From sequence record OZ240615.1: a DNA stretch of 64,000 nt; one strand, written 5' to 3'. The notes below the pieces were generated by a model that made no database searches, was not told where the DNA came from, and worked only from the letters and a program-made list of their open reading frames with translations. The position numbers were made by a program, and so were the translations under genes. This document shows, piece by piece, positions 20,712 through 43,140 of this stretch (position 1 is the first letter of the stretch; each line of letters opens with the position of its first letter).

Positions 20712-21185
20712 TTAACCCTCAAACCGATAGACGATAATTTCAAAATCAGTATCCGAAAAAGCCCGCTTGATATTTTCGCTCACGCGCTCCCAGTCACCAC
20801 CTGCTAACCCGCACCCCAATAGAGGGAAACCGACTTTTAAAACCTTCCCTTCCTTTTTCAGGATAGAGGCCATTAGTTTCAACGCCAGATAAAGAGCAGC
20901 GTAATGGGTTTTATAGTCAGGGTGCGAATGTTCGTGATGAAATTGACCGCAAAGATTGAACCCCCATTGATTCTCATTTTTAGCAGCAGTTAACTTCCCC
21001 AAACGCTTGTTGTAGGGTCGTTTATCGGAGAAGTAAGATTCCGCTAACCAAGGCAATGCTTCGAATATTTTTACAGCAATACCGCTCTTAGCGATCCCGA
21101 AGCAATTGACTTGGTGGGCTATGACGTCGACTTCCTTATTAAGAAAAGCGTCAATCAAATCCCCTTTTATTTCAGTGTATTTCAT
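20712..21185 (-). CDS. Macrodomain protein (Poa1p/DarG-like ADP-ribosyl hydrolase)
   Basis: GDLI..IAHQVNCFG..KSGIA..NLCGQ..FPLLGCGLAGGDWERV. Confidence 0.9.
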   Translation of the reverse strand: MKYTEIKGDLIDAFLNKEVDVIAHQVNCFGIAKSGIAVKIFEALPWLAESYFSDKRPYNKRLGKLTAAKNENQWGFNLCGQFHHEHSHPDYKTHYAALYLALKLMASILKKEGKVLKVGFPLLGCGLAGGDWERVSENIKRAFSDTDFEIIVYRFEG

Positions 21186-21203
21186 AGCCCGCTCTCGCCG
21201 TGG

Positions 21204-21821
21204 TTAATTGATGATGAATTTACATTTTTCGAGGTGGTATTCTTTATCGCCAAAGCAGAGTTTCTTAACGTAATCCGGACGAGGGAGATTAACGTTCTCC
21301 GTGTAGGCGTTATGGGATACTAACGACTTGTTAACGACTTCGCCTTTGTTGTATTCAACGAGCCGACCGGGGAATTCTTGGGAAAAACCAAACCCCGAGA
21401 ATTTCAATTTTACATGCGAATGAAAAGAGAGATTTCGCCAACCTGGGAATTTCAACCCTTTCACGTGGGCGGCGATAAAACGAATCAACGCAGTGTAAAC
21501 TTTACCCAGTTCACCCGTGGTAATGACTTCGTCTTCGTTACCGAAACGGAAGATTACTTTGGAATCGTGACCATCTTTATTACGGTACCAGTCGACGACA
21601 AAACGAGAGTAGTAACCGTAGAGACCATTCTCTGGCGTACTGCGGTTACGATAAGACTGCGCCGTATCAGAGTCGTACCGGTAGCACGTATTATGCTCAA
21701 AAGGCTGACCCCGTCTGAAACCGATGAACTGCGCGAGCTGGACCGCCTGGATTAATGTCAGGTGTACGACCGTACCTAACTTGTTAGTAAGAATAAAGAT
21801 AGGACTTGAAGCTGTTTTCAT
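21204..21821 (-). CDS. Hypothetical protein
   Basis: 205 aa ORF. Confidence 0.8.
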   Translation of the reverse strand: MKTASSPIFILTNKLGTVVHLTLIQAVQLAQFIGFRRGQPFEHNTCYRYDSDTAQSYRNRSTPENGLYGYYSRFVVDWYRNKDGHDSKVIFRFGNEDEVITTGELGKVYTALIRFIAAHVKGLKFPGWRNLSFHSHVKLKFSGFGFSQEFPGRLVEYNKGEVVNKSLVSHNAYTENVNLPRPDYVKKLCFGDKEYHLEKCKFIIN

Positions 21822-21826
21822 TCGTT

Positions 21827-22189
21827 TTACTCCTTATGAAACGGATTATAATCAAAAGCAATGATCGTTTTTTCTTGCCCTTTCGGAGACCATGGCCTAA
21901 CTGAGAAATTAAATGTACCTTCGGAAGATCTCTCAACAAGTTCCTTCAAAGCAGGGGACGGTTTTATTTCGGCATAGATTCCGTCTTTCTCCCTATAGAA
22001 GTCCATCGCTATCCCTGCATATTGACTTTCATCAATAGTTAACCACCTGCGGTTAGCATCATCTGGCATAAGACGTAAAATACTAGGTGATTCAATTTCC
22101 CCAATGACTTTTCCCCGTAGCATTTCAAGGCGGCGAATAATTTCATCTTCGGTAAACCCATGAGTATCGGCTATTTTAATAGTGAGCAT
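21827..22189 (-). CDS. Hypothetical protein, possibly a degenerate prohead-protease-like fold
   Basis: GEIESP..RWLTID..FSVR loosely resembles T4 gp21-type GEL.HP..R...I...S.R. Confidence 0.6.
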   Translation of the reverse strand: MLTIKIADTHGFTEDEIIRRLEMLRGKVIGEIESPSILRLMPDDANRRWLTIDESQYAGIAMDFYREKDGIYAEIKPSPALKELVERSSEGTFNFSVRPWSPKGQEKTIIAFDYNPFHKE

Positions 22190-22201
22190 GATATTTTACC
22201 T

Positions 22202-22609
22202 TTAATTAAAATTGAACACCAATCGTTCAGCACCGGATTCTTTGAGGGTCTTTAGTTGTTCGAACCACCACTCACCAAGATGTTCCCGCCAACTCGCCGT
22301 TACGCCTTCTCCTTCAGGAAGAGTACCTCTTCCACTATCTCTACGATCTTCTACGAGCATATCGTAGTCAAAGTCCAGTAACGCTTTGACATCCAAGGTA
22401 TAATTATAATCGCAATCGTAACTGATAGGTTCCCCTGCCTTTTCCCAATTATAAGGCAAAACAGGGACAGCAGAATAGTTCCTTACATCGGCGAGCCAAC
22501 CGTAAATAAAGTAGTTCTGGAAATCAAACCACTCTGCTCCTCCGGAAATAGTCTCCCATTCCCCTTCTTTGTTTTTCTTCTCAAACCGCCCATCAATATA
22601 ACTGCCCAT
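22202..22609 (-). CDS. Conserved hypothetical phage protein
   Basis: QNYFIYGWLADVRN and RLVFNFN resemble the MGCDIH..RNY.LF..LA.VRN family. Confidence 0.8.
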   Translation of the reverse strand: MGSYIDGRFEKKNKEGEWETISGGAEWFDFQNYFIYGWLADVRNYSAVPVLPYNWEKAGEPISYDCDYNYTLDVKALLDFDYDMLVEDRRDSGRGTLPEGEGVTASWREHLGEWWFEQLKTLKESGAERLVFNFN

Positions 22610-22612
22610 GAT

Positions 22613-23830
22613 CTAATCTCCGTAGTAATAACTGAAGGTGAAGGTAAACCCGTACTTGGTGTATTCCGGTGAAATATGGAAGATCTGTGCGGGTTTACTT
22701 TCCTTCATCGCGGGGATACGTTCTTTTAATGTATCTAGTGCGATGTCCACTTGGGTGTTACTTAGTTCAGAAAGAGTTATTTTCGCACAATAGGTAGCGG
22801 CGAATATATCTTTTCTATTCCAGCCGACCGCGTGAGAGACTGATTTACCGTCGTCCCAGTCTTTAACATAGTGGCGAAGTGTTTGTTCCGTAAAAGACAA
22901 GTCTAACTTCGGTACACTGACCATCTTTTCTTTAATTAATGAGACTAGTGCCCGAGTCAACGTACTTAAAGAAACCTGTTGTACTTGATCGCTGGCGCCC
23001 GAATTTAATTTTCGGATAAAATGGCCAATGAGTTGAGGGAGTTTATTGATCATTTTATTAAAAATAGTATCGTTAGGTGGTTTTACGGGAGGGAAGCAAA
23101 TTGACAATATAACTTTATCCCGATTACCCCCAATTCTTTCCACAGAGTATTCCGCGTAGAGCGAACCGTCTTCCCCGAAAGAAAGTTCAACGTCCTTTCT
23201 AACAGCTGAGGAACCTATCACATCTCGCGCGTCATCAAAAGTGATACTATAGGCTATCGGGGAAACGTTGTTATCTTTGCTCCGCCGGTAATTTGTAAGG
23301 GCACTAGTAACCGCGAGGTGCGGGGCGTTGAGGTCCTCTAGGGTAGCGACGATGTCTTTCATTTTAGTCTCCTGTTTATTACTGAGGGAATTATCGACGA
23401 AGGTAAAAATAGCTTCTATTTCTTCGACGGGATTAATAACATGACTACGGCTCATGTACGAGGTTATTAACCTATTTAGTTTTTCGATCAGTTCTTTTTC
23501 TGAGGCAACACCCACGTAACCTTTTTTCTGCCACTCAAAACGAATATCGAAATGAATAGAGTAGCGATCATTGTCAGGAAGTACTGGTCTTGTAAAATGA
23601 GTGACAGTACCGTCTTTAATTACAATATCGATACAAACCTGATCTATCGCGCCGCTAATGAATTTTGGAACACTCCAGCTATATTCTAGCTCAGGATTCG
23701 GGGTAGTGGGTTCGCAAGACAGTGTAAATTTCGGGAAAGGAGAATAACTGACATTGGCTTTAAATAAATAAAATTTACCTGCTTGAAAATCTTTAACAAT
23801 TGAATCGTTCTGACCTTTTGAATAGTTCAT
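22613..23830 (-). CDS. Hypothetical protein
   Basis: 405 aa ORF, GAGGT RBS. Confidence 0.85.
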   Translation of the reverse strand: MNYSKGQNDSIVKDFQAGKFYLFKANVSYSPFPKFTLSCEPTTPNPELEYSWSVPKFISGAIDQVCIDIVIKDGTVTHFTRPVLPDNDRYSIHFDIRFEWQKKGYVGVASEKELIEKLNRLITSYMSRSHVINPVEEIEAIFTFVDNSLSNKQETKMKDIVATLEDLNAPHLAVTSALTNYRRSKDNNVSPIAYSITFDDARDVIGSSAVRKDVELSFGEDGSLYAEYSVERIGGNRDKVILSICFPPVKPPNDTIFNKMINKLPQLIGHFIRKLNSGASDQVQQVSLSTLTRALVSLIKEKMVSVPKLDLSFTEQTLRHYVKDWDDGKSVSHAVGWNRKDIFAATYCAKITLSELSNTQVDIALDTLKERIPAMKESKPAQIFHISPEYTKYGFTFTFSYYYGD

Positions 23831-23857: not shown

Positions 23858-23883
23858 AGAGTCGGAGGAGTTCCTCCGACTCT
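23858..23883 (-). terminator. Hairpin, probable terminator
   Basis: agagtcggagg-agtt-cctccgactct. Confidence 0.7.
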
Positions 23884-23889: not shown

Positions 23890-24198
23890 TTATTTTGGTC
23901 TTACACGTAGTTCGAGTTTCACTTTGCCGATAGAATCATTCTCAATGGCAATACTTCGCCAGAGACCGATCTCCCCGCCATAGGCGTAAAAGTAGATCTC
24001 GCGTTCAAGAATGTCGAAGAGTCGAGTAACCGCCCTCTTCTCATCTTCGTTGAACTCAAAGCATGGATCAAGCGATTTTTCTCGATGTACCTTTACGTTT
24101 TGAACCAGTTCTACAGCATCGTTAAATTCTGTAGAAACTAGTCCGGCGTGAACGGCGTTATGTACGTAAACTACTGTCTCCAGTACACAGGTCGTCAT
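23890..24198 (-). CDS. Hypothetical protein (start reassigned to MTTCVLE)
   Basis: ATG at 24198 is TAATG-coupled to the upstream small ORF. Confidence 0.75.
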   Translation of the reverse strand: MTTCVLETVVYVHNAVHAGLVSTEFNDAVELVQNVKVHREKSLDPCFEFNEDEKRAVTRLFDILEREIYFYAYGGEIGLWRSIAIENDSIGKVKLELRVRPK

Positions 24199-24329
24199 TA
24201 GATTACTCCACCCCAAACGATCGCTGCTGCAAATAACCACCAACCCCAGCTATGGTCCCCGTGAAAGAAACCATAGCCCCCAATACCAATTAACACCAAG
24301 CTTAAAATTCCGGCCATGAAATATTTCAT
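24198..24329 (-). CDS. 43-aa two-helix membrane protein (MKYFMAGILSLVLIGIGGYGFFHGDHSWGWWLFAAAIVWGGVI)
   Basis: Missing from the ORF track; ATGA overlap with the thyA stop and TAATG overlap with the next gene. Confidence 0.75.
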   Translation of the reverse strand: MKYFMAGILSLVLIGIGGYGFFHGDHSWGWWLFAAAIVWGGVI

Positions 24330-25711
24330 ACCGACACCTCTATTTTAATCGCAGGGTGGTGTTTGTATTCCGTGAAGTTGAAATCCTCAAACGTGAGATC
24401 AAATAACCCTTTCTTCGGAATCTCCGAGTTGTAGTAATGCTCAGAACGAACAAAACATTCTACTGGTTTATACGGCTCACGAGTAAGCTGTAATTTCACT
24501 TCCTCGATCTGGTTAAGGTAGATATGGACGTTAGTCAGATTACCAACCAACTGTTTTGGCGCCATCCCCAATTCATGAGAAAACGCTAAGAGCATGAACG
24601 CGTAGAACGCCTGATTGTAAGGTTCGCCGACGGGTAAATCCACAGAACGCATTGAGTACTTCAGACTCAACCACTGCGTAGGGACATGATTCTCAGTAAG
24701 CCACTCCGCTTTACGTTCCGTCGACATCTTAGGTTGATTACAATGTTCTTCTGCGTAGCAGTCGGACATGTGGTCTTCCCAGAGATCTTGGAAATACGGA
24801 TTAGCGTTATTCGCGCACCAATCCAAACGCTCGCGCAGCGTCATCTCTTCCACGTAGAACTCCACGAGGAAATGACAGGGAGTGAGGCACGGTTTTCCGT
24901 TGATAACGTTTTCCTGCGGTGTCACCTTTACCGTCTTAGTTCGCGGTACTCCGTGACTGGCCAGAAAATCTTCGCAGTTATCGGTCTTACCGTGATCTTC
25001 CAGGCGCGGCCAGAAGATCGCATAAAGGTCCGGGCTGTGGGTTTTTAAATGTTCCCACATCTCGTCACTACTGAGAGTAACTTCTTTCGTTTCCTCTGGC
25101 ATCCAGAGCGGGTTCCATGCCGAGATGAGAATCCGGCGGGATTCAGGGTTGTTCCGCAGAAGATCTAAAACGTATCCGACTTGATCAACACCTTTCTTCT
25201 TAAGCGGATCTTCTGAGAAGTTTCGCCAGGCGCTACCATACGGCGCATTCAGATCATTTGCGTGATGTGCGATTACCGAGCGTGTACGCGGTACGTTATG
25301 CGAATCCAACCACACGTGACCCTCTTCGACTGGGCGAATAGAGATCTTCTTACTGAAGAACTCGATGTACGCATCTTCGTTGTTTTCTTCCAGCCAACGC
25401 AAGCGCTCGTAATTCTCCAACTCCACTTCCGTAGAGACGTTTTCTTTCAACCGCCACGGCGCCCAGAAATCTCCTTTCCCGTCCTCAGTGATCATCGACT
25501 CCATATGGAGCTCACCGTTAAGGATAGAACGGAACTCTCGCCAAGCCAGTTTACGAGAAACAAACTTTGTGGTGAGTAACGGGAACTCGCCTTTTGATAG
25601 ATCGTATTTTAATCTGGCATCAAAAATACCGATAGTCCCTGTCCCGGTACGATCGCCACGCACTCGCCCTGTTTCCAAAACTTCCTGGAGTAATTCAAGG
25701 TACTGTTTCAT
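24326..25711 (-). CDS. thyA: Thymidylate synthase with three large insertions
   Basis: DRTGTGT, FPLLTTK, SRRILISAWNP, catalytic PCH, MRSVD, PYN (Asn indicates dUMP specificity), H.Y.NQ; 461 aa versus about 264-320 typical. Confidence 0.95.
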   Translation of the reverse strand: MKQYLELLQEVLETGRVRGDRTGTGTIGIFDARLKYDLSKGEFPLLTTKFVSRKLAWREFRSILNGELHMESMITEDGKGDFWAPWRLKENVSTEVELENYERLRWLEENNEDAYIEFFSKKISIRPVEEGHVWLDSHNVPRTRSVIAHHANDLNAPYGSAWRNFSEDPLKKKGVDQVGYVLDLLRNNPESRRILISAWNPLWMPEETKEVTLSSDEMWEHLKTHSPDLYAIFWPRLEDHGKTDNCEDFLASHGVPRTKTVKVTPQENVINGKPCLTPCHFLVEFYVEEMTLRERLDWCANNANPYFQDLWEDHMSDCYAEEHCNQPKMSTERKAEWLTENHVPTQWLSLKYSMRSVDLPVGEPYNQAFYAFMLLAFSHELGMAPKQLVGNLTNVHIYLNQIEEVKLQLTREPYKPVECFVRSEHYYNSEIPKKGLFDLTFEDFNFTEYKHHPAIKIEVSV

Positions 25712-25941
25712 TTTTTCTCATTCTCCCCTATTTCAGTTAATTTCAACATCAAGTTATTGCGTGCGTTTAGCATGGTCTGTGTATTTTTAAAACCTATGCG
25801 CAGTTCACCACCGGAATAGAAGAGAACTTTAAAAAACGCATAATCGTTTCGGTCTTCTGGCCATGCCGGTCCAACAAACTTTATGTCGTTTAGATCGATC
25901 ATAAAACTTTGATCTTCACCATCGAGTATCGTAGTTAACAT
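25708..25941 (-). CDS. Hypothetical protein
   Basis: 77 aa, overlaps thyA start. Confidence 0.7.
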   Translation of the reverse strand: MLTTILDGEDQSFMIDLNDIKFVGPAWPEDRNDYAFFKVLFYSGGELRIGFKNTQTMLNARNNLMLKLTEIGENEKK

Positions 25942-26330
25942 TCACTTTCCTCAGTAAAGATTTTATCGATGTACGGTTTTTTATTGACCGCAACAAATTT
26001 ACCAGTAAACCACCCGTCGGAGAGACGAACAATCCTGTAATAAAACATCCGATTAAAACGCGTGCCGTTACGGCTAGTAATCAAATTTGTGATTGCCGCA
26101 GGTAGGCAAAAGGCACCCGACATGATTTTTCTATCGTACCCTTTTCCTACCCGGAACCGAAACTCATCAGTGATCGGATCTAGCTCGAAGTCGATCGATG
26201 AGTATAATTCCGGTTGTAGGTCCCGGAACCCGGCGGAGAGATAACAACTTCCGCCTGGCGTTAAGCGAAGATAGACGGTCTTTTGTTTCGGTGGCCGCTT
26301 GGGAATATTGTCGAGTTTCTCAAAAGTCAT
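25935..26330 (-). CDS. Hypothetical protein, paralog of 27493..27915 (start reassigned to MTFEKLD)
   Basis: VYLRLT..CYLS..IDFELDP..EFRFRVG..DGWFTG. Confidence 0.75.
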   Translation of the reverse strand: MTFEKLDNIPKRPPKQKTVYLRLTPGGSCYLSAGFRDLQPELYSSIDFELDPITDEFRFRVGKGYDRKIMSGAFCLPAAITNLITSRNGTRFNRMFYYRIVRLSDGWFTGKFVAVNKKPYIDKIFTEESEC

Positions 26331-26835
26331 CTGGGTTCGGTCCAAATTGGAAAGGTGGGAAGAAGTTAATAACCATTTCGACTTTTTCTTTGTCAATAAA
26401 GAACTTCCCAACTTCGTTATAGCCCGGGTCAAGGGAGTCGACGAGTCTTTCTTTAAAATACTCGCAAACCACATCGCTGTGTTTCATTTCACTGATGGCG
26501 GAGACTCTCAGTATAATTTCGCCTTCAATTTTGTTGATGTGGTAATTCACGGTGTACCCACGCAGCGCGGTGTTGATTTCTCCAACATGGAGTGTTTCGG
26601 CGTAGAAGCTAGAATAGCCAAATTGACCATCCCAGTTTTCTTTTAGAATTAGTTCGAATTTCTCCTCGATACTGCGCAGGATTTGCCTAAAATCTTTTTC
26701 AAGTTCAGGAATTACTTCTCTTTTACGCTCTTCTAATTCATCAACGTAAAGGAAAAGATCTTTAAACTTATTCCCTCCGCGAGTAGAGAGTTCTTTTCCT
26801 TTTTTCAAAAACCAAAATATTTGATCGAGTTTCAT
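26320..26835 (-). CDS. Hypothetical protein (start MKLDQIF)
   Basis: GGAGG RBS before ATG at 26835. Confidence 0.75.
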   Translation of the reverse strand: MKLDQIFWFLKKGKELSTRGGNKFKDLFLYVDELEERKREVIPELEKDFRQILRSIEEKFELILKENWDGQFGYSSFYAETLHVGEINTALRGYTVNYHINKIEGEIILRVSAISEMKHSDVVCEYFKERLVDSLDPGYNEVGKFFIDKEKVEMVINFFPPFQFGPNPDDF

Positions 26836-26878
26836 TTTTATTCCTCCGTAATTTATCAAAATAAAACAAGACGGAATA

Positions 26879-26906
26879 AAAAGAGAGGGGGATTCCCCTC
26901 TCTTTT
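26879..26906 (-). terminator. Intrinsic terminator
   Basis: aaaagagagggg-gatt-cccctctctttt. Confidence 0.85.
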
Positions 26907-26939
26907 CTATTTACCCGTGCGAGTGTTTACTTCTTAGTT

Positions 26940-27434
26940 TTACCCGTAAATTTCATCGTATTTTGTTACGTAGCTTTTACCAAAAATTATTTCTTCGTGC
27001 TCAGCGGGGTCTTTTTTCCAGTATAGTTCATCAACTAACTGAACAGCACGATTAAACGAGCTGGCACGATAGAGAAGAAATTTCTGTACACTTTCCGGAG
27101 GAGGGTACTTGAAGAAAATAGCGACGGCGTCAAAATTACCACGGCCACTAGAGTAATCAAGTTTGTTATTCAATGGCCAGATCCCAGCAATATTTTCATA
27201 TCCTTCTTCCCCTTCGTATTTAGCATTATCAATCACCCAAATGACGTCAACTTCAGAGAACCCTTTCTCTTTATAATTTTCCATAAATCCCATCGACGGG
27301 ACAATGCTAAACGGAAGCGCGTACGGTAACCCTTTCTTAGTTCCGTTCTGGACTCTCCCCGTTAACCATGCGCCTAGTTCTCTTTCAAAATTACCTGCGT
27401 ACTGATTAGTCTCAATAACGAATGCGTAAGACAT
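26940..27434 (-). CDS. Conserved hypothetical phage protein
   Basis: FVIETNQYAGNFERELGAWLTG motif recalled from large phages. Confidence 0.8.
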   Translation of the reverse strand: MSYAFVIETNQYAGNFERELGAWLTGRVQNGTKKGLPYALPFSIVPSMGFMENYKEKGFSEVDVIWVIDNAKYEGEEGYENIAGIWPLNNKLDYSSGRGNFDAVAIFFKYPPPESVQKFLLYRASSFNRAVQLVDELYWKKDPAEHEEIIFGKSYVTKYDEIYG

Positions 27435-27915: not shown

Positions 27916-27945
27916 GTAATTCTCCTTGACTAAAAAATAAAAGAA

Positions 27946-27969
27946 TAGAGGGGAATTAATTCCCCTCTA
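27946..27969 (-). terminator. Intrinsic terminator
   Basis: tagaggggaa-ttaa-ttcccctcta plus T-tract. Confidence 0.8.
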
Positions 27970-27974
27970 CATTA

Positions 27975-32383: not shown

Positions 32384-32450
32384 ATATTGACTCGCTTATG
32401 TAAGTGTGTTTAAAGGATAAATTTAAGTTTACTGCCTCGATTACATAGTA

Positions 32451-32466
32451 GGGATATAGATGTCAA
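32451..32466 (-). promoter_or_regulatory. Putative early promoter motif (one mismatch)
   Basis: Minus strand TTGACATCTATATCCC. Confidence 0.65.
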
Positions 32467-34760: not shown

Positions 34761-34765
34761 TAGAA

Positions 34766-35170: not shown

Positions 35171-35180
35171 TTCAATTTCC

Positions 35181-35528: not shown

Positions 35529-35569
35529 GTTTCTTACCTCCCGTTTCAGATTAAGCGAATGGAAAATAA

Positions 35570-35597
35570 AAAAGGAGAGGCGAAAGCCTCTCCTTTT
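35570..35597 (-). terminator. Intrinsic terminator
   Basis: aaaaggagaggc-gaaa-gcctctcctttt. Confidence 0.85.
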
Positions 35598-35611
35598 ATT
35601 CAGCGATAGGG

Positions 35612-36124
35612 TCAATGAACAATCTTAATGAGAACTTCATTAATCGAACACAGAACCGAATCATCTTTACGGTTATTGGCGTAAAAATACGCGTATTCAT
35701 TCCCTTCGTCGTCAGGAAGTACCGTGAAGGAAATGTCAGCCGCAACCTCCAGCCCAGTATAGAACCAGCCCGTAGAAAGTTTCCCTGGGACCAAATCTAC
35801 TCTTAAAGCCATAGGTATTAAACTGTCGTAACCACCTATCGCTTTAACTACAGTCACGCAATTTAGTCCGGGGACCAGGGTCTGGTTATTTCGATGTTGT
35901 TCAGAAATATCCCCTAAAGTATGGGAATGAGACTGATGTTGGAATAACGTATAAGTGGCAACGTCACACGAGAAAGCCCCTTTATAGAGTTCATCGTTTT
36001 TTAACTCAACACCAGGCGGGAGCGGATAGATCTTCATCATAACCACACCTCCTGTATTAGAGAGCGAACTGGTCTTCAGTAGCGACCTTATTTCTTCAAC
36101 GGTCATTTCCTTTATTTCGGGCAT
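35612..36124 (-). CDS. Hypothetical protein
   Basis: 170 aa ORF. Confidence 0.8.
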   Translation of the reverse strand: MPEIKEMTVEEIRSLLKTSSLSNTGGVVMMKIYPLPPGVELKNDELYKGAFSCDVATYTLFQHQSHSHTLGDISEQHRNNQTLVPGLNCVTVVKAIGGYDSLIPMALRVDLVPGKLSTGWFYTGLEVAADISFTVLPDDEGNEYAYFYANNRKDDSVLCSINEVLIKIVH

Positions 36125-36140
36125 TTGTTTCTCTCTGTTT

Positions 36141-36590
36141 TTAATTAGCAGGCGGTGGGTTGTTTTTCAGCCGATTTGCTTCCATTACCGGTAAATTAGC
36201 CTCAGTTGGGACGTAGATAACCTGATTCTTGGTTTGCTGTAAACTGTCTACCCAAAGGTAACGTAGATACGCTTCGTTATTCTTCAGGCTGTCACCGATG
36301 ATCTTGTTGGCCCGTGCTACGCCGCCAGCACGAATGACTTCTGCTTCGGCTAAGCTTTTAGCTGACTCTTTCTTAGCCTCCGCCTCCTGCACAGCTATTT
36401 GGCGGTCTTGAGTGGCCTTCATCAGCGCGGCCTTACCTGCCATACCCTGCTGCCATACGTTGTAATACGGGCAGCCTGCCATGAGTAGTACAATAAAAGC
36501 CGCAACTCCGATTGCTACCCATTTACCTACTTTCTTCAACAATGCTTTCAGTGTCTCATTGTCGGTGTCGGTGTTATTGTAATAGCGCAT
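36141..36590 (-). CDS. Membrane-anchored coiled-coil protein (resembles the SPFH/band-7 C-terminus)
   Basis: TM segment plus AEAEVIRAGGVARANKIIGDSL..YLRYLWV..IYVPTEANLP, a common phage family. Confidence 0.75.
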   Translation of the reverse strand: MRYYNNTDTDNETLKALLKKVGKWVAIGVAAFIVLLMAGCPYYNVWQQGMAGKAALMKATQDRQIAVQEAEAKKESAKSLAEAEVIRAGGVARANKIIGDSLKNNEAYLRYLWVDSLQQTKNQVIYVPTEANLPVMEANRLKNNPPPAN

Positions 36591-36841
36591 TATTTTTCCT
36601 GTTTAGTTAAGGTTAGTGGTTCACGCGCCATAACTTCATTGACGGTTACTGTTAGACCGGACTGCGCAAGGATTGCAACCACCTCTTCGGCGCGTTCCGT
36701 GGATACGTCAGGTTCGCCGGCTATTTGATTGAGTGTTGTCTCAATGCAGTATTTATTCAGTAATTCTGAAATAAGTTTACCGATGGAGCTTTTACCCGAT
36801 CGTGCCGGGCCGATTATATTGATCGTAATTTCGTTTTTCAT
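36590..36841 (-). CDS. Small protein with a P-loop-like motif
   Basis: GPARSGKS in 83 aa; too short for a complete NTPase. Confidence 0.65.
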   Translation of the reverse strand: MKNEITINIIGPARSGKSSIGKLISELLNKYCIETTLNQIAGEPDVSTERAEEVVAILAQSGLTVTVNEVMAREPLTLTKQEK

Positions 36842-36868
36842 TTTGTTTTCCTGTTAGGTTAAACTAAA

Positions 36869-37558
36869 TCATTTATTGGTTTTGGTGATATACCATTTCC
36901 AAAGGCCGTAGAACGCGTTCATCAAGAACACCGCCCATTGCGCAACCTGCGCCCATGAACCCGGCTGATCGAGTGCTGGAATCACCCAAAGGTAGATCGT
37001 GACGCAATTGATGATAATCCAGAGGATCCATTGCTCTGGCTGTTGTTTGATCATCATCCACATGGCGATGAGGGATGCGACTAAACAGAACGCATCCAAC
37101 GCAGGGAACGGATCTTGCGTTGTTTTGAGGTATTCAGTCAATCCGTACCAGAAGACAACCCCGACGACGAAATAGAGAATCACATCGCGTAACGTAATTC
37201 TTTTTACGGCAACGTCCGCTTTCGCTGGCGTTTTACCCAGATCTTTCGTCCAGTAATAAATACCGATGAATTGCATGGGTAGATAAATAACGTTTAGCGC
37301 TGCGTTCGCGTAGAGGCCGGTATTGTACGAAACGATACCGTACGTGATTACACCAACGGTTCCCCAGTAGTAATTGGAGACACGACCTTTCGCTACCAGA
37401 ATAACGCAGATCACGTTAGTCAGCGCCGCCGTAAATTCAAGTGGGCTGGCGCTCCAACTACCAGCGCCCACTAAGATCAACGCAATGATCAGCCAAAGGT
37501 ATTCGACTTTCTTCCAGTGCGCAAAGTCAGTGAACGTTTTCATTACAAGTGAGTTCAT
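36869..37558 (-). CDS. pnuC: PnuC nicotinamide riboside transporter
   Basis: EFTAALTNVICVILVAKGRVSNYYWG, Y.PMQFIGIYYW, PALDAF, QWILWIIIN; multi-TM. Confidence 0.92.
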   Translation of the reverse strand: MNSLVMKTFTDFAHWKKVEYLWLIIALILVGAGSWSASPLEFTAALTNVICVILVAKGRVSNYYWGTVGVITYGIVSYNTGLYANAALNVIYLPMQFIGIYYWTKDLGKTPAKADVAVKRITLRDVILYFVVGVVFWYGLTEYLKTTQDPFPALDAFCLVASLIAMWMMIKQQPEQWILWIIINCVTIYLWVIPALDQPGSWAQVAQWAVFLMNAFYGLWKWYITKTNK

Positions 37559-37561
37559 TGG

Positions 37562-38035
37562 TTATTCCTCGAGGTTAATGCGGCGAAGGATGTAAGGACG
37601 GATGTCTTGATTTCCTGTACGGAATTTATCAACGATGATACTGATGCCGTCTGCGCCCTCATAAACGAAAACAGACATATCGGCTTCGTTGTCGATACGC
37701 AGCGACGTATGATATCTGCTGAAATAATCATCGGGATTATCAGGGAAGCGATTCTTGTTCATCGGTTGCTGATAAAACATGATAATTCCACCAACCTCGG
37801 CGACTTCCCGAGTTTCTCGCAGCAATGTTAAGACCTCGTACTCATTCTCACCGGTTGTACGGTTAGGTGGGATATAGACGTCCTGAGGCGTTTCCCCTTC
37901 CATGCAGAATAATCCAGCGATCTTTTGTGCAACGTCAACTTGGTTGGTTTCACTGATCGTTTTGATGATCACCAACCCGCCCTTTTGGAAAAGTCCAGTT
38001 TGACGGAAAATAGCGTTAAGTTCAGAGATTTTCAT
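37562..38035 (-). CDS. Hypothetical protein between nadR and pnuC
   Basis: 157 aa ORF, ATGA overlap with nadR. Confidence 0.75.
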   Translation of the reverse strand: MKISELNAIFRQTGLFQKGGLVIIKTISETNQVDVAQKIAGLFCMEGETPQDVYIPPNRTTGENEYEVLTLLRETREVAEVGGIIMFYQQPMNKNRFPDNPDDYFSRYHTSLRIDNEADMSVFVYEGADGISIIVDKFRTGNQDIRPYILRRINLEE

Positions 38036-39231
38036 TGATCACCCCAATTTAAGCCATTGTCAATACTTTCAACCATTGACCAATCGCTATCAAATTCACC
38101 GCCGCTTGCAGCAGGTGGGAATTTCCCCGGCTCTTCTGAAATATTCCAATCAATGCGAGTATTTCCGGATAACATGTTGTCGATCGCTACCCGGGCTTGA
38201 TCCAGGCGTTCTTTGTACGAGTCACCTGTAATATAGATCGTCCGACCCCGAGGAGTTTGGTTTTTAAACTCCAGGAGCATTTGTTGGAATAACCCGTCAG
38301 TTTTCTCTCGATCCGGATTTAAGCGCAAGCCGTCATCGACCCACGGGACTTCAGGTGACAGTATCAGAACAAGGTCGTAATGTTCTTCGGCTGCGATGGC
38401 GGAGACGATAGAGTTAGGCTTACCTTCGTACAGACGATGGTAATACTCCGTGACGAACGCGTTGGTATCGACGAAACAAAGTCGATTAGAGGTTCGTAAC
38501 GCTTCCTCCTCCAACTCTTTGTGGCGGTACGCGATCAATGGGTAGTCAGAACTACGCAGCGTTAACTCAGAGCCCGCTAAGACGGTTTCACAGTACGTAC
38601 GACCGTACTCTTCTACCCAGCTGGTATTATAGAGTTTAGCCAAGTTCTTGACGAGACTACTTTTTCCCGCGCTCTCGACACCCATGACGACAACCCGCAG
38701 GCAATAGTCCTTACGGACAATACTGGGGAGATATTCCCAGTTGGCGTAAAGGTTATCACGTACTTTAGTTGCCGAGATAGGAACACGAGTACGTTCACTG
38801 TCAACGATGACGTGCTCAACAAAACCGAGGTGAGTTTTGTATTTCTCATCGTAATCCAGTTCGCTACTGAAGATTGCGATAGATTGAGCTTGGCTGTGTT
38901 TAGCAGCCAGTTTCCCTGCCTCGCTGAAAATCTTTGCCCCTAATAAAGCGGCGTATTCCTGCCAGCCGTTAGGATATTCCGGCACCGAAGCTTCGTCGAT
39001 GAAATCGATTGTGACGTGCTCGGTATCGGCGTAGGTTTGCTGTAGCCAGCGCAAACGGTTTTTGAAGTTCAGTACCTGCTGATCGCGCGGGGATTGTTTA
39101 TCCAACCAACGTTGGTCGTGAGATAATACCACGAGGACGTGTTTCGATTGGACAGCAGCTTCTGTAATTAGGTTGATGTGCCCCAAAGTCAGGGGTGCAA
39201 ACTTACCGATGACGACGCCTAAATCAAACAT
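38032..39231 (-). CDS. nadR: NadR-like bifunctional NMN adenylyltransferase / nicotinamide riboside kinase (no HTH)
   Basis: GKFAPLTLGH (HxGH-like), ISATKVR, GVESAGKS P-loop, EEYGRTY, FVDTNAF, PWVDDGLR. Confidence 0.92.
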   Translation of the reverse strand: MFDLGVVIGKFAPLTLGHINLITEAAVQSKHVLVVLSHDQRWLDKQSPRDQQVLNFKNRLRWLQQTYADTEHVTIDFIDEASVPEYPNGWQEYAALLGAKIFSEAGKLAAKHSQAQSIAIFSSELDYDEKYKTHLGFVEHVIVDSERTRVPISATKVRDNLYANWEYLPSIVRKDYCLRVVVMGVESAGKSSLVKNLAKLYNTSWVEEYGRTYCETVLAGSELTLRSSDYPLIAYRHKELEEEALRTSNRLCFVDTNAFVTEYYHRLYEGKPNSIVSAIAAEEHYDLVLILSPEVPWVDDGLRLNPDREKTDGLFQQMLLEFKNQTPRGRTIYITGDSYKERLDQARVAIDNMLSGNTRIDWNISEEPGKFPPAASGGEFDSDWSMVESIDNGLNWGDQ

Positions 39232-39250
39232 TGACTTTCACCTCTTAAAT

Positions 39251-39562
39251 TCAAGCGAAATGATGATACAAACGATGTAAGTGGTAACCTTTGTAGTTCA
39301 TCGCGGTGAAGCCTTGTTCGTTCTTTACCACGATTTTGGCTGCGTAATCCTCCATCAAAAGGAAATCGCGCCCTGACTTAGAAAGAATATCGCCATCATA
39401 AACCGGGCCATCAACAATCAATTGGTTCATGGTACCGATAACATGCCCGACATCTTTGCGTTCGAGTAACATCGTCACGGTTTTCTCTAACTCAGCCGCG
39501 TACGCCAGATCGCTTTCTTCTTCGTTATCAAGATTGCAGATTTCGATAATGGTGTTCAACAT
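39251..39562 (-). CDS. Conserved hypothetical phage protein
   Basis: GPVYDGDILSKSGRD..EQGFTAMNYKG motif. Confidence 0.8.
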   Translation of the reverse strand: MLNTIIEICNLDNEEESDLAYAAELEKTVTMLLERKDVGHVIGTMNQLIVDGPVYDGDILSKSGRDFLLMEDYAAKIVVKNEQGFTAMNYKGYHLHRLYHHFA

Positions 39563-39574
39563 TTTCTTTTCCTC

Positions 39575-39970
39575 TTATTCTTCAGTCCAGGGATGAATTT
39601 CCCAGTTACGTACTTTATACTTACGATTCTCAAATTGTCGGCTACGAATGTAAACATCGACCTTGAGGCTGGTTGCGGTTGGCACTAAAAATATAACGAG
39701 ATGCGCGGGTTCATTTTGATAAACTTCCGCAATTGAAACAAACGCAGAGAAAGGGAGCGATTGCTTTTCTGCACGCCGGAAGTTATCGTACAGTAGTCGC
39801 ACTGCGCGGCGAGCGAACAGTTGATCATGGTACCAGCTATGCCGAATACTTTTCCTTCCTGCCTTTAATTTCAAAAAGAACAGGCGTTTTTCCGCCCAAG
39901 GTAAAAGATAACCTACCCCCGTGAGTGCACCTGACCAGAACACCCACGATAGCGTTTTAAATAAGCCCAT
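39575..39970 (-). CDS. Hypothetical protein with N-terminal hydrophobic segment
   Basis: 131 aa ORF. Confidence 0.75.
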   Translation of the reverse strand: MGLFKTLSWVFWSGALTGVGYLLPWAEKRLFFLKLKAGRKSIRHSWYHDQLFARRAVRLLYDNFRRAEKQSLPFSAFVSIAEVYQNEPAHLVIFLVPTATSLKVDVYIRSRQFENRKYKVRNWEIHPWTEE

Positions 39971-39978
39971 AATTCTCC

Positions 39979-40212
39979 TTAATTAACGGGCGGTTTCTTG
40001 AAAGGATTATAGATATTCAGATACCAGATTAACCCCACGAAGATACCGATACAGATAAAAGGCCATGCGATACCAATCGTCAGCACCTTCCACATTTTCA
40101 TCCGTAAAACTACCCGACGATATTTTGGATTAACAATAGGTTTCCAAACGATCATCAGGAAAACCGCCAACCAAATAGCGCCGCCAGAAAAAGCGAGTAT
40201 TGCGAGGTCCAT
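39979..40212 (-). CDS. Small two-TM membrane protein
   Basis: 77 aa, two hydrophobic helices. Confidence 0.75.
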   Translation of the reverse strand: MDLAILAFSGGAIWLAVFLMIVWKPIVNPKYRRVVLRMKMWKVLTIGIAWPFICIGIFVGLIWYLNIYNPFKKPPVN

Positions 40213-40221
40213 TTTCTCCTC

Positions 40222-40782
40222 CTAAAATGTATTGTTATTTGACGTCCAGTTTTTGTCTTCTGGGAATTCAACGCCAGCAAAAACTTCACTAACTAATGCT
40301 GGGATTATTTTAATTAAATCTTCCTCGATGTTCTCCCAATGCGCGCAATGGAGAGCATGAAGTTTACGGTATGCTACGCCGCCAGAATTTGTCATGGTGA
40401 TATTTAGTGTTCTGACGAGGTCCCTGATAGGGCAAATATCGAACCATCCGTTCTTCGCCATTCTGTCGAATTCGATAATCTCTTTGTGAGCCACACTCCT
40501 TTTAAAACTATCGTCACCAGGGTTGGGCCAAGAAATGGCGCGGGTAATGGGGTGAAGATCATTAAATGGGTCAATCGTCTTGAGGAAGAGTTCTCGGGTT
40601 TTATTATCTTCCGGCAGAACTCTTTGGACGACAGTGGGTATTTGCTCTGGGACAGCGGGTAAGGCAACCGGACTAACCTGTTCCTTTTGTTCGATAACTG
40701 GGCTCTGCGCTACCGGAGGGGAAAGAAGAATCTCTTTATCTTTCCCCGTAGCGATAACTATACCGAAAATTTTAATTAGCAC
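40222..40782 (-). CDS. Conserved hypothetical phage protein
   Basis: FDICPI..YRKLHALHCAHW..IP motif. Confidence 0.8.
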   Translation of the reverse strand: MLIKIFGIVIATGKDKEILLSPPVAQSPVIEQKEQVSPVALPAVPEQIPTVVQRVLPEDNKTRELFLKTIDPFNDLHPITRAISWPNPGDDSFKRSVAHKEIIEFDRMAKNGWFDICPIRDLVRTLNITMTNSGGVAYRKLHALHCAHWENIEEDLIKIIPALVSEVFAGVEFPEDKNWTSNNNTF

Positions 40783-41043
40783 TTATAACCCCTTTACTGA
40801 GAATTGCTTTAAACCGTGACGATAATGAACCCGATTCTTAAGTCTGCCGCCCAAATCAACACATCGACGAAAACGTGCGTTTAACAACGCCCTTCCGCAA
40901 CGCCTCCCGCCAAAAAAATGAATTCCAGAATCGATCCCGTCAATATACTGTTTACCGATTTTAATCAGAAACAAATGGTTTTTAGTAATCGAACTTTGTT
41001 TCAGTAAAGACCTTTGCTGTTTTAAACATTTCTTCAATGCCAT
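40783..41043 (-). CDS. Basic hypothetical protein (start MALKKCL)
   Basis: GAGGGA RBS before ATG at 41043. Confidence 0.6.
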   Translation of the reverse strand: MALKKCLKQQRSLLKQSSITKNHLFLIKIGKQYIDGIDSGIHFFGGRRCGRALLNARFRRCVDLGGRLKNRVHYRHGLKQFSVKGL

Positions 41044-41053
41044 ATTTCCCTCC

Positions 41054-41179
41054 TTATTCCAAGGAATTATAGAGCTTCTTACAGATTGCAAAGAATACCC
41101 TGAGAATAGCGCCGGAGATATACCACGCGCCGCCGTAACAAACAATGACAAAAATAAGAATTTTCCATTCAACGGGCAT
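41054..41179 (-). CDS. 41-aa single-TM protein (MPVEWKILIF...)
   Basis: GGAGGT RBS; follows the terminator. Confidence 0.7.
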   Translation of the reverse strand: MPVEWKILIFVIVCYGGAWYISGAILRVFFAICKKLYNSLE

Positions 41180-41212
41180 ATTACACCTCCGGTATTTAAG
41201 AAATAAAATAAA

Positions 41213-41240
41213 GAGAGGGAGGGAAAATTCCCTCCCTCTC
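41213..41240 (-). terminator. Intrinsic terminator
   Basis: gagagggagggaa-aa-ttccctccctctc plus T-tract. Confidence 0.85.
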
Positions 41241-41243
41241 CGG

Positions 41244-41879
41244 TCAGTATAAGTTTTCTGAGTACAACTCGTCGTTAATGATAACAACATCGGGGCGCGT
41301 TGCATTAATCTGCCCGGCGTGTTTCGCGATGATAAAGGCGTCTTCACGATTCCAATAACGATCCCACTGGTCAATAAAACCTTGTCCTTCACCGTGCGGG
41401 AATTTAATCTCCGGTTCACCTGCTAGTTTCCGCAAACGCTTTATTTCGTCACCGATAAGGTGTTGAAGATTACTACCGTGGCGAGCGGAAGGGATAACGA
41501 GTTTTTCAACAGGCTTCATTCCACGGCCTTCCTGTAGAATGTCTCGTGTGCTCACCTCGCCCCAGACATTAGCGGCAGAGACAATCCGAACCTGAACAAA
41601 AACCCCGGGAGAAGGTTCGTGGACGCAGATCGCAGGAAGAGCGTTTTTCTCTTCTTCCGACAGTACCTCGCTCTCTGTGTAACCTCTCTCTTTACGGAAA
41701 TGAGATTCCGCAGTCTGCACTGAAGCTAGAATATCCCTTGCGAACGCTCGCGCTTCTTCGATAGTATAATCCCGACCATTCAGAAGTCCGCCGACATTAA
41801 TGACTTTGTCCTCTTCAGTATCGTAATCGCGTACCGTTACCGAAGAGTAATCTCCCCGGTGAGAAAGGTGAATAGTCAT
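41244..41879 (-). CDS. Conserved hypothetical phage protein (two-domain)
   Basis: C-terminal SARH..QGFIDQ..YWNREDAFIIA..GQI..LYSENLY motif. Confidence 0.8.
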   Translation of the reverse strand: MTIHLSHRGDYSSVTVRDYDTEEDKVINVGGLLNGRDYTIEEARAFARDILASVQTAESHFRKERGYTESEVLSEEEKNALPAICVHEPSPGVFVQVRIVSAANVWGEVSTRDILQEGRGMKPVEKLVIPSARHGSNLQHLIGDEIKRLRKLAGEPEIKFPHGEGQGFIDQWDRYWNREDAFIIAKHAGQINATRPDVVIINDELYSENLY

Positions 41880-42169
41880 TTTTTATTTACCTCGCGGGTC
41901 AGTTGCCGAAAACTGAGTCGTTGCCCCAGTTTGATCGTACGGATGGGGAGTTCGATCGAACCGCAGGCGTTAGCCACAATCGTTCCCGTTGGTGTCCCTA
42001 CGACCGCGGTGAACTCATCGGGTTCTTTTTCGATTAAGTTAGCTGCAGCCAAAAAGAGTGCGTCATTGCTCGCTATCAGGCGCAATTCAGACTCATTAAT
42101 GATATCGCCGATATACGGATATTTTGTGTCCTCAATCGGCTGAGTTTTGCTGACCTTTTTAGCGATCAT
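41876..42169 (-). CDS. Hypothetical protein
   Basis: 97 aa, 4-nt overlaps at both ends. Confidence 0.7.
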   Translation of the reverse strand: MIAKKVSKTQPIEDTKYPYIGDIINESELRLIASNDALFLAAANLIEKEPDEFTAVVGTPTGTIVANACGSIELPIRTIKLGQRLSFRQLTREVNKK

Positions 42170-42600
42170 TCTTTACCTCCGTCAATGACAGAGAACGGAT
42201 TGGCTTTTTTCATCGGGGTAACGTTGTCCGTCGAAGTTACTGGATCAACTTCCTCTTTCCCTGTGATCACAGGGTACGGCAGCGGTAAATTCTGGTCGCT
42301 GGTATCCGGGTTGAGGACAACGCGTACTTTATCCCATGAAAAAGTGTCGCTGGCGAGTCGACCGCCGAATCGACCCTCGAAAAATAACCCGTCATCAAAA
42401 GATTGTAGCTGGCAGGAATGCGGAGAAATGTTGAGTACTAAATACTCGTATCCCTCGACGTCGGGTGTGGGTTTAATAAAGCTCCGTAAAATGGGGTTAG
42501 TACTGATACATTTACCATTAAGGGCAATAAAAATTCGGTTCCCTTGATCACAGTGCCATTTATAAGCTGCGTCGAAAAGTGCTTTGTTCAGTGAGGACAT
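42166..42600 (-). CDS. SspB-like (ClpXP adaptor) protein
   Basis: LFDAAYKWHCD, LVLNISP, LFFEGRFGG, flexible tail ending FSVIDGGKE; resembles SspB LLRAFYEWLLD, IVLNIAP, VRFNARFGG. Confidence 0.7.
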   Translation of the reverse strand: MSSLNKALFDAAYKWHCDQGNRIFIALNGKCISTNPILRSFIKPTPDVEGYEYLVLNISPHSCQLQSFDDGLFFEGRFGGRLASDTFSWDKVRVVLNPDTSDQNLPLPYPVITGKEEVDPVTSTDNVTPMKKANPFSVIDGGKE

Positions 42601-42624
42601 TTGATTCTCCTTGGATTGGTTTCA

Positions 42625-43140
42625 TTAGGGTGATATAGTCTTCAAAATGCTTCGAGTCTCTTCCCAGAATTGGACTAACCATTCCCCACTCTTAGGCGTC
42701 ACTACTTTGACGTTGTCTTCCCAAACCCTCGCGCCCTTCTCCATTCGCCAGTCCCCAAAAACGTAGTAATGTGTAAAGGGTAATTCTGACGCAATAAGCG
42801 CGTTGTATTGGTGGCGGTAAGCGTTGAGTTTTGCGAGATTGGCAGATTTAATAATCGAGAGAAAATCTGGGTGCTGAATAATCTCTAATTTCTTACCGAA
42901 CGCTTTGGCTTCATTCCCCCACAATCCGCGAAGGTATTGATGTTTGAAGCCTGTTTTCGCGTAGTACCAAAACCCCTCCATACTTTCAAAGTTTCCGTAT
43001 TCGGGATGCTCAAATGGCGTGCGAGGAAAATGCGAAAGAAAGAAGCCCAGTCGGTTCTTTGACTTGGAATAAATGTTGATGTGGTCGATGCCATCATTGT
43101 TTGGGTCGAAAGTCATCAGGTGCCACCTTATTGTACGCAT
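42625..43140 (-). CDS. NADAR/YbiA-like protein
   Basis: LSHFPRTPF..GNFESMEGFWYYAK, EAKAFGKKL, IKSANLAKL resemble NADAR LSNF..F..Y.SVEHYY.A.K, EAK.LGR, M...L.AKF. Confidence 0.55.
   Translation of the reverse strand: MRTIRWHLMTFDPNNDGIDHINIYSKSKNRLGFFLSHFPRTPFEHPEYGNFESMEGFWYYAKTGFKHQYLRGLWGNEAKAFGKKLEIIQHPDFLSIIKSANLAKLNAYRHQYNALIASELPFTHYYVFGDWRMEKGARVWEDNVKVVTPKSGEWLVQFWEETRSILKTISP
42630..42645 (-). promoter_or_regulatory. Putative early promoter motif driving the SspB-like gene
   Basis: Minus strand TTGAAGACTATATCAC inside the 3' end of the upstream ORF. Confidence 0.7.

Follow-up and report, generated by a model that had tools for sequence, protein, structure and literature searches.

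The final 64 kb of sequence record OZ240615.1 (referred to below as the window, the whole stretch of 64,000 nucleotides that was analysed) belong to Klebsiella phage vB_KpM_Centimanus, which has a genome of 299,730 bp. Positions are those of the window, equal to the record position minus 235,730; window 28000–44000 was 100% identical to record 263730–279730. Between positions 20,712 and 43,140 lie genes for a macrodomain protein, a KptA/Tpt1 RNA 2'-phosphotransferase, a PnuC-type nicotinamide riboside transporter, a NadR-like enzyme and a divergent NADAR-like protein, all linked by family to the metabolism of nicotinamide adenine dinucleotide (NAD+) and ADP-ribose. A prediction made earlier from the DNA letters had described these as five enzymes in one accessory region, which may act as one programme against host defence. 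All five genes were found in that region, on the minus strand (Table 1). PnuC is a transporter, not an enzyme, and the five genes probably represent four independent, separately transcribed modules of known kinds in an accessory block, not one programme.

Table 1. Position of the NAD+/ADP-ribose genes of Centimanus, of the hairpins between them and of associated features (window positions unless stated otherwise).
Feature	Position	Strand	Description
Macrodomain protein, ALC1-like class, SCO6735/BT1257 subtype	20712–21185	-	157 aa; Gln81 at the position of the catalytic Lys of DarG/TARG1
KptA/Tpt1 RNA 2'-phosphotransferase	28888–29457	-	189 aa; R18, H19, R66 and R121 in motifs identical to those of solved Tpt1
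PnuC-type nicotinamide riboside transporter	36869–37558	-	229 aa; NARP3 transporter component
NadR-like bifunctional enzyme lacking the helix-turn-helix (HTH) domain	38032–39231	-	399 aa; nicotinamide mononucleotide (NMN) adenylyltransferase and ribosylnicotinamide kinase; NARP3 enzyme component
Divergent NADAR/YbiA-fold protein	42625–43116	-	163 aa from the likely start, longest open reading frame (ORF) to 43140; candidate AdfN-like ADP-ribosyl N-glycohydrolase
Terminator-like hairpin, strongest of the region	41212–41241	-	13 pairs, 8 of them G-C, with T-run; between the NADAR-like and NadR–PnuC units
Terminator-like hairpin	35570–35597	-	12 pairs with T-run; closes the NadR–PnuC unit
Terminator-like hairpin	27945–27970	-	11 pairs with T-run; downstream of the KptA gene block
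Palindromic G+C-rich hairpin	23858–23883		11 pairs; in the gap between a gene ending at 23890 and a gene starting at 23830
ORFan between nadR and pnuC	37562–38035	-	157 aa; start overlaps the nadR stop
HD-superfamily 'phosphohydrolase'	29940–30668	-	242 aa; located two genes upstream of kptA, within one run of overlapping genes
CENTIMANUS_00136, second macrodomain	record 132246–132692, outside the window	-	148 aa; Pfam Macro at 7.8e-10
Prs-family gene overlapping a downstream Nampt-family gene	record 227059–229676, 6–9 kb before the window	-	NARP1 gene order (Adps + Namat)

The five genes are spread over a block of 49 annotated genes (approximately 19.9–45.1 kb), every one of them on the minus strand, with 44 other genes interspersed. 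No NAD+/ADP-ribose or RNA-repair domain was detected in the 37 of these 44 genes that were scanned against Pfam (seven short ORFs were left out). The hairpins of Table 1 split the five genes into four putative units: the NADAR-like gene, nadR with pnuC, kptA, and the macrodomain gene. The palindromic hairpin is the putative boundary between the block of the thymidylate synthase gene (ThyA) and that of the macrodomain gene. No strong terminator-like hairpin (at least 10 pairs) was found between nadR and pnuC, which lies downstream of nadR on the same strand. The hairpin sites are matches to a consensus pattern, not mapped transcript ends, and terminator-like sites were commoner than expected from shuffled sequences (17 against 7.5 and 27 against 19). 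Matches to the sigma-70 promoter were not enriched, with 27 found against 33 expected, and were not used. The four hairpins of Table 1 and a fifth at 45110–45133 appear to form one family, with a G/A-rich stem, a short A/T loop and a T-run, and may constitute the standard terminators of Centimanus.

Clustering of the genes was assessed with a scan statistic. Four of the six NAD+/ADP-ribose units of the genome lie within 22.4 kb, which gives p ~0.02 when the genome is taken as uniform. When the units are confined to the approximately 135 kb of accessory-gene blocks (a total estimated for this analysis), p rises to ~0.15, so the proximity of the units is no greater than the layout of the genome gives.

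Centimanus belongs to a clade of 13 records. Centimanus is an FBKp24-like phage, and FBKp24 is 94% identical to it at the DNA level; KpLz-2_45 (genus Siatvirus), LPKP23, MJ359 and six records named "Serratia phage Kp*" show 77–79% DNA identity. Each of the 13 records contains the five genes, and always in the same order. Compared with the two distant relatives KpLz-2_45 and LPKP23, their products are 81–94% identical and rank 1st to 16th of 49 (median 71–74%), which shows each of the five to be under purifying selection and functional. This conservation says little about linkage between them, because 40–43 of the 49 genes of the block are kept as well (KpLz-2_45 lacks nine of them and LPKP23 six).

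Beyond the clade, co-occurrence was assessed from record counts by genus and from two fully checked outgroup genomes, Salmonella phage S116 and Erwinia phage Ea35-70. The families differ approximately 15-fold in their numbers of phage records, with 1441 for the macrodomain, 772 for NadR, 514 for the NADAR-like protein and 98 for KptA, and the 13 Klebsiella and Serratia records of KptA are exactly the Centimanus clade. Of the set, the T5-like phage S116 carries just NadR and PnuC. The chimallivirus Ea35-70 has KptA, a NADAR-like homologue and a DarG2-type macrodomain with the catalytic lysine (Lys-type), and no NadR, PnuC, Prs, Nampt or macrodomain with glutamine at that position (Gln-type) was found in it; its best match to the window macrodomain is the Lys-type protein, at 26% identity (E 4e-4). 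The neighbours of kptA are not common to the four lineages compared. Counts for Salmonella phages (NadR 174, NADAR-like 175, macrodomain 163) had suggested co-occurrence in T5-like phages, which was rejected upon inspection of S116, with NadR and PnuC only. The original prediction had proposed to look for co-occurrence in related phages and had held that a patchy, uncorrelated distribution would speak against a programme. Co-occurrence holds throughout the clade; outside it, the distribution is patchy and uncorrelated.

By sequence, the NadR–PnuC pair is the published NARP3 NAD+ salvage module. NadR contains the Pfam domains CTP_transf_like (3.4e-6) and AAA_28 (2.7e-30) and matched phrog_3462 at 1.5e-124. 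Its match to NCBIfam NF005988 starts at protein residue 3 and only at model position 65 of 411, and the HTH domain is therefore lacking. The best match in the PDB was 9x6f/9x6h (2.1e-139, residues 2–354 aligned), which is Bas30_86, the NARP3 enzyme (Sci Adv 2026, PMC13464706). PnuC matched PF04973 (1.9e-44), phrog_1880 (1.1e-57), TIGR01528 (5.8e-36, above the cut-off) and PDB entry 4qtn (1e-29), and is the best-conserved gene of the region with 94% identity in the relatives. To the counterparts in S116, NadR is 60% and PnuC approximately 48% identical. The pair Bas30_86/87 takes up nicotinamide riboside, turns it into NAD+ and saves phages from the defences Sir2-HerA and DSR1 (PMC13464706); the idea of a NARP3-type route had already been raised in the paper on NARP1 and NARP2. 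The riboside-to-NAD+ route that had been proposed for NadR and PnuC thus agrees by sequence with NARP3, its activity having been shown for Bas30_86/87. S116 was also seen to have two genes annotated as Sir2 and an NAD-dependent DNA ligase whose annotation is split into two pieces (L012:37968-39921, 46868-48538); NAD+-using phage enzymes therefore accompany NARP3 in the S116 lineage.

Adjacency of nadR and pnuC is not strict in Centimanus, where an ORFan is interposed. This 157-aa ORFan had no match in Pfam, PHROGs, NCBIfam or PADLOC, and its AlphaFold2 (AF2) model was unusable with a predicted local distance difference test (pLDDT) score of 39. It is restricted to the clade, with only five homologue clusters, all of at least 65% identity (65% in LPKP23), and KpLz-2_45 lacks it and has nadR directly next to pnuC. 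The ORFan was taken to be an insertion, not a third component of the module. Directly downstream of pnuC (36590–36841, minus strand) an 83-aa P-loop ORF was observed with weak matches to AAA_18 and to the N-terminus of cytidylate kinase. It is absent from both distant relatives and could represent a small protein that binds NTP or part of a kinase.

For the NADAR-like gene, a start at 43116 is more likely than the one at 43140, since the former was chosen in the deposited annotation and comes with a Shine-Dalgarno sequence, which the ATG at 43140 lacks. In plain-sequence searches the protein had no match in Pfam (E up to 0.01), NCBIfam, PADLOC or the PDB (phmmer), and in PHROGs it matched phrog_652 and phrog_11222, both families of unassigned function. 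Among 98 homologues, a few are labelled YbiA, N-glycosidase or PF08719, the last label being carried by a single one. The protein could be placed only by a family profile and by a fold search. A profile of 73 family members matched, in the whole PDB, NADAR 8bau (1.8e-4) and YbiA 2b3w (0.011) only. The AF2 model (pLDDT 95.1) had 2b3w (YbiA), 8bau and 8bat (both NADARs) as its top three Foldseek matches in the PDB, and the matches in BFVD beyond its own family were mostly proteins annotated as NADAR. By profile and model, the assignment, also made by the original prediction, is right at the superfamily level.

E55, K79, H124, Y125, D16, G17 and H20 are invariant in all 73 members of this family. 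In the alignments, E55 falls on the Glu conserved in 8bau and 2b3w, and K79 lies in the helix that follows. The Lys seven residues after the Glu, K62 in Centimanus, is kept in only 22 of the 73. H124 is located at a predicted strand, and the hidden Markov model alignments to 8bau and 2b3w end before it. The protein is 87% identical in the relatives. AdfN proteins are phage NADARs that reverse the ADP-ribosylation of guanine by DarT1 and thereby counter DarTG1 (PMC11825919); E36 and K43 are the catalytic residues of T4 AdfN that contact ADP-ribose. The charged residue on the last core strand is Glu in YbiA, Asp in DarT-linked NADARs and His in NADARs of the phage gp30.3 type. Judging from the modelled NADAR fold and from the Glu, Lys and His that are invariant, the most likely activity of the Centimanus protein resembles that of the AdfN anti-DarTG1 factors: cleavage of the N-glycosidic bond in ADP-ribosylated DNA guanine.

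The window macrodomain stayed below the threshold of Pfam Macro (E 0.0015, 19 bits for a cut-off of 22), matched phrog_335 at 5.6e-41 and the OARD1/TARG1 structures of the PDB at 8e-7, and was recognised by DarG models at 2.6e-12 and 5.8e-12, over the macro half only (residues 14–154). A profile of its family (A2) matched 2fg1 (1e-27), 2afc (1.1e-27) and SCO6735 5e3b (3.7e-24) best, and TARG1 (5e-19), DarG (~7e-18) and Poa1p-type phosphatases (7e-16) more weakly. In this family of 26, N27 is invariant (26/26) and H24, N77 and Q81 are each kept in at least 90%. N27 corresponds to the active-site Asn of the DarG2/AdfM type (N22 in DarG, N23 in AdfM). The catalytic Lys of that type (K80 in DarG, K78 in PhiKZ AdfM) was not found in the window macrodomain, which has Q81 in its place: Q81 aligns with K84 of TARG1, the equivalent of DarG K80, and A128 with D125 of TARG1. 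These TARG1 and DarG residues were mapped by hand-counted chain-index offsets, which agree with the structure-based statement in PMC9411070. The solved proteins BT1257, 2afc and SCO6735 have a Gln in the same column as Q81, and in SCO6735 this residue, Gln85, takes the place of the Lys and is indispensable; SCO6735 removes thymidine-linked ADP-ribose from DNA and strips the modification from proteins as well (PMC9411070). Identity of the window protein to its relatives is 81–82%. It is, by profile and residues, of the SCO6735/BT1257 type and not of the DarG2/AdfM type, and most likely removes ADP-ribose from DNA thymidine, acidic protein residues or phosphate ends.

DarG2 and AdfM macrodomains, like those of the SCO6735 type (PMC9411070), reverse the ADP-ribosylation of thymidine by DarT2, and AdfM (PhiKZ gp104), an anti-DarTG2 factor of a chimallivirus, carries the Lys (PMC13309987). 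The window macrodomain was rejected as the AdfM orthologue on account of its Gln at the Lys position and of a better candidate elsewhere in the genome, CENTIMANUS_00136. The best PDB matches of this second protein were DarG macrodomains (5.5e-20 and 1.4e-18), with the residues aligned to DarG N22 and K80 kept; the two Centimanus macrodomains align with each other over 45 residues only, at 31% identity. CENTIMANUS_00136 is the likely AdfM orthologue of Centimanus and a candidate anti-DarTG2 factor. The counter-defence and ADP-ribose roles of the original prediction stand in so far as the family of each gene, assigned by sequence or fold, has a published role of this kind.

KptA matched PF01885 at 2.9e-42 over model positions 4–176 of 177, the full-length two-lobe domain, phrog_5470 at 5.2e-56 and its NCBIfam model at 3e-58, below the equivalog cut-off. 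Thirteen Tpt1 structures were matched in the PDB, the best being 7kw8 (7.2e-42). The catalytic Arg-His-Arg-Arg tetrad, R18/H19/R68/R121 in CthTpt1 (PMC6333775), was mapped by motif position in the 7kw8 alignment, not by structural superposition. KptA is 83–87% identical in the relatives and is an intact Tpt1. A role in RNA repair had been proposed, with the Tpt1 product ADP-ribose-1''-phosphate named as a macrodomain substrate. No H-x-T/S pair of a 2H phosphoesterase was found in the flanking ORFs, no RNA ligase domain of Pfam in the neighbouring genes and no homologue in the Centimanus genome of RtcB (the RtcB of Ea35-70, which carries an RtcB-like ligase, was the query). An annotated polynucleotide kinase lies 78 kb away, without a Pfam match. 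A comparison of the surroundings of kptA in Centimanus and three other phages revealed no shared neighbours, ligase or 2H motifs. These searches gave no backing to the repair role, and Tpt1 releases a cyclic phosphate, so that a further enzyme is needed before a macrodomain could act. The role of KptA is the least certain of the five: it may heal RNA ends in dependence on host enzymes or ADP-ribosylate 5'-phosphate ends. The 242-aa HD protein upstream of KptA matched phrog_16069 (7.1e-23), PDEase_I weakly (3.5e-4) and, among solved structures, only weak HD-motif entries; it was not found near KptA in the other lineages examined.

Outside the window, the Prs-family and Nampt-family genes of Table 1 form a pair that is NARP1-like by gene order and may be NARP1 or a true phosphoribosyl pyrophosphate/Nampt route. 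Relatives of the Prs-like protein occur in 1,578 phage records. Centimanus may carry two pathways for the reconstitution of NAD+.

The genome of Centimanus encodes a chimallin (PF25677, 1.9e-18), and a PhuZ tubulin and split multisubunit RNA polymerases are annotated; on these grounds it is a jumbo phage of the nucleus-forming type, in agreement with what is reported on FBKp24. The other recognisable genes of the block encode ThyA, a dUTPase, the HD-superfamily protein, an NfeD-like protein and the short P-loop ORF. Several genes of the block (22613–23830, 26320–27434, 25708–25941 and 24198–24329, minus strand), a 405-aa ORF among them, have no counterpart in either distant relative, from which it follows that gene turnover is rapid around the conserved enzymes. 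The thymidylate synthase (24326–25711, minus strand, 461 aa) is 81% conserved in the relatives; its Pfam match is split in two stretches, and the protein therefore has a large insertion compared to an ordinary ThyA. No tRNA was found in the window. A tRNA cluster is located elsewhere (record 116612–121483), with Asn, Gly, Gln, Tyr, Arg, Leu and Met tRNAs and one labelled tRNA-Stop(tta) by the depositors.

Read as four modules, the genes would work as follows. PnuC would import nicotinamide riboside, which the kinase of NadR would convert to NMN and its adenylyltransferase to NAD+. The pair would thereby refill an NAD+ pool emptied by NAD+-depleting defences, as was shown for the 60%-identical Bas30/T5-type module. 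The NADAR-fold protein would cut ADP-ribose off guanine in DNA, and the Gln-type macrodomain would remove it from thymidine, acidic protein residues or phosphate ends. KptA would spend NAD+, either in the removal of RNA 2'-phosphates or in the ADP-ribosylation of 5'-phosphate ends. The proximity of the genes would result from the concentration of accessory genes in the block and from vertical inheritance in the clade, not from the formation of a unit.

Several points weigh against this interpretation. The terminators are consensus matches only, and Centimanus transcribes with RNA polymerases of its own. Throughout the clade the five genes keep one order, and a functional link is compatible with the data from within the clade. 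The Lys at Glu+7, catalytic in T4 AdfN, is kept in a minority of the NADAR-like family (22 of 73, as given above). In Ea35-70, the NADAR-like gene directly adjoins a macrodomain gene, and in a 2022 survey Macro and NADAR co-occur above chance in DNA viruses (PMC9503650); for these two reasons, some Macro–NADAR coupling is real elsewhere. The Ea35-70 locus (Ea357_151/Ea357_152, L017:12691-14048) consists of the DarG2-type macrodomain gene followed by the gene of a 293-aa protein. The N-terminal ~120 residues of the latter are a NADAR-like domain, 43% identical to the Centimanus protein, and its C-terminal half bears the label DprA-like in the orthologue from RAY, making the locus a Macro-NADAR(-SLOG?) neighbourhood in another chimallivirus. 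The DprA-like gene of Centimanus was tried as a match to this C-terminal half and rejected (E 0.48 or worse).

Three rival readings and a further, purely metabolic coupling were weighed against the four independent modules. Under the first, which is rather unlikely, the phage would be metabolically self-sufficient: NadR–PnuC and the Prs/Nampt pair would keep NAD+ high for the needs of the phage, including KptA, in a long infection, and the hydrolases would clear by-products. Jumbo phages with independent systems for NAD+ synthesis and utilisation were reportedly described in 2024 (PMC11662467). PHROGs classes NadR and PnuC among the auxiliary metabolic genes, KptA consumes NAD+, and the genes for ThyA and dUTPase, of nucleotide metabolism, lie in the same block. 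Against this, the close homologue of NadR–PnuC rescues phages specifically from Sir2-HerA and DSR1, and anti-DarT roles have been demonstrated for phage NADARs and DarG-like macrodomains. Self-sufficiency and counter-defence are not mutually exclusive.

The one co-ordinated programme of the original prediction, in which co-selected and co-expressed genes would restore NAD+, erase ADP-ribose marks and repair RNA, with the Tpt1 by-product passing to the macrodomain, is unlikely. It draws on the constant gene order in the clade and the rank of the five among the best-conserved genes of the region, on the Prs/Nampt pair 6–9 kb before the window, on the Macro/NADAR co-occurrence and the Ea35-70 adjacency described above, and on ADP-ribose-1''-phosphate being a macrodomain substrate, with Poa1p-type phosphatase structures among the matches of the macrodomain family. 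These points are opposed by the four strong hairpin sites that separate the genes, by the 44 genes in between, by clustering that is not significant within accessory blocks, and by family distributions that differ approximately 15-fold, with different subsets held by S116 and Ea35-70. Furthermore, a ligase or 2H enzyme for the RNA-repair route was not found in the searches around KptA, and the cyclic phosphate released by Tpt1 calls for one more enzyme. Four putative units, intervening genes and differing distributions, with subsets of the genes in other lineages, were thus found where one programme had been proposed.

A coupling that is metabolic though not genetic is likewise unlikely. It would consist of a closed cycle returning ADP-ribose to NAD+, with two pathways of NAD+ reconstitution running side by side in one phage, in which ADP-ribose from the two macrodomains and the NADAR protein, together with the ADP-ribose cyclic phosphate of KptA, would feed the Prs/Nampt pair and NadR–PnuC would add imported riboside. 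Very unlikely, finally, is a writer–eraser pair in which KptA caps the 5'-phosphate ends of RNA or DNA with ADP-ribose and the Gln-type macrodomain erases it: passages of PMC10415124 and PMC12678800 state that Tpt1/KptA enzymes ADP-ribosylate such ends, the RtcB homologue search found no RNA ligase in Centimanus to explain a repair role and both genes are conserved across the clade, but the genes are 7.7 kb apart in different putative units, Ea35-70 has KptA without a homologue of the Gln-type macrodomain, and phage records number 1441 for the macrodomain family against 98 for KptA.

Four independent modules of known kinds thus remain the probable content of the region. The Klebsiella jumbo phages of this group are clinically relevant, and the analysis provides a checked annotation for them. 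It places a NARP3 module, as identified by sequence, in a nucleus-forming phage and recovers a NADAR-fold family, phrog_652/phrog_11222, that standard domain models miss. Centimanus carries two ALC1-like macrodomains predicted to differ in catalysis, of which only the one outside the window is DarG2/AdfM-like. A thematic list of genes in an accessory block of a jumbo phage does not equal an operon-like programme without data on expression and distribution.

The viral NAD+–ADP-ribose network was described in a survey of 21,191 viral proteomes in 2022 (Iyer, Burroughs, Anantharaman and Aravind; PMC9503650), which covers KptA in jumbo phages, NAD+ salvage by NadR/NadV and the co-occurrence of the domains Macro, NADAR, SLOG and Nudix within large myoviruses. 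Like known Tpt1/KptA enzymes, the Centimanus protein is full-length with the active-site motifs; the survey ties KptA to RNA ligases and 2H phosphoesterases, whereas the Centimanus gene has neither nearby. The window macrodomain shares with SCO6735 and BT1257 (PMC9411070) the Gln at the catalytic Lys position, an Ala where TARG1 has its Asp, and the conserved H24 and N27, but is a phage protein with low identity to the solved bacterial ones. With AdfM and DarG2 it shares the ALC1-like class, DarG models are its best named matches in the defence and NCBI libraries, and the carrier of AdfM is also a chimallivirus; it differs from them in the catalytic Lys, which it lacks.

Upon comparison with AdfN (T4 gp30.3, AdfN-Bas32 and AdfN-Bas60; PMC11825919, PMC11125620) and the NADAR of DarG1, the NADAR-like protein of Centimanus is beyond the reach of PF08719 and has an E+7 Lys that is unconserved in its family. 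It agrees with them in the predicted YbiA/NADAR fold, the aligned invariant Glu and a Lys in the next helix. The invariant His of its family is consistent with the His that marks NADARs of the gp30.3 type, as a candidate match in position, and the protein is likewise small, stand-alone and encoded by a large myovirus.

The NadR–PnuC pair differs from the NARP3 module of the T5-like siphovirus in being carried by a jumbo chimallivirus and in the clade-specific 157-aa ORFan between the genes. NadR counts 399 aa compared to 357 aa in the 9x6f chain, with an insertion inside the chain and approximately 45 additional aa at the C-terminus. Both systems consist of a NadR without HTH domain, with NMN adenylyltransferase and kinase domains, and a PnuC-type transporter downstream on the same strand. 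Given the survey of 2022 and the later experimental tests of NARP3, AdfN and AdfM, the five genes of the original prediction make up a correct catalogue, for a new phage, of kinds that had been described before.

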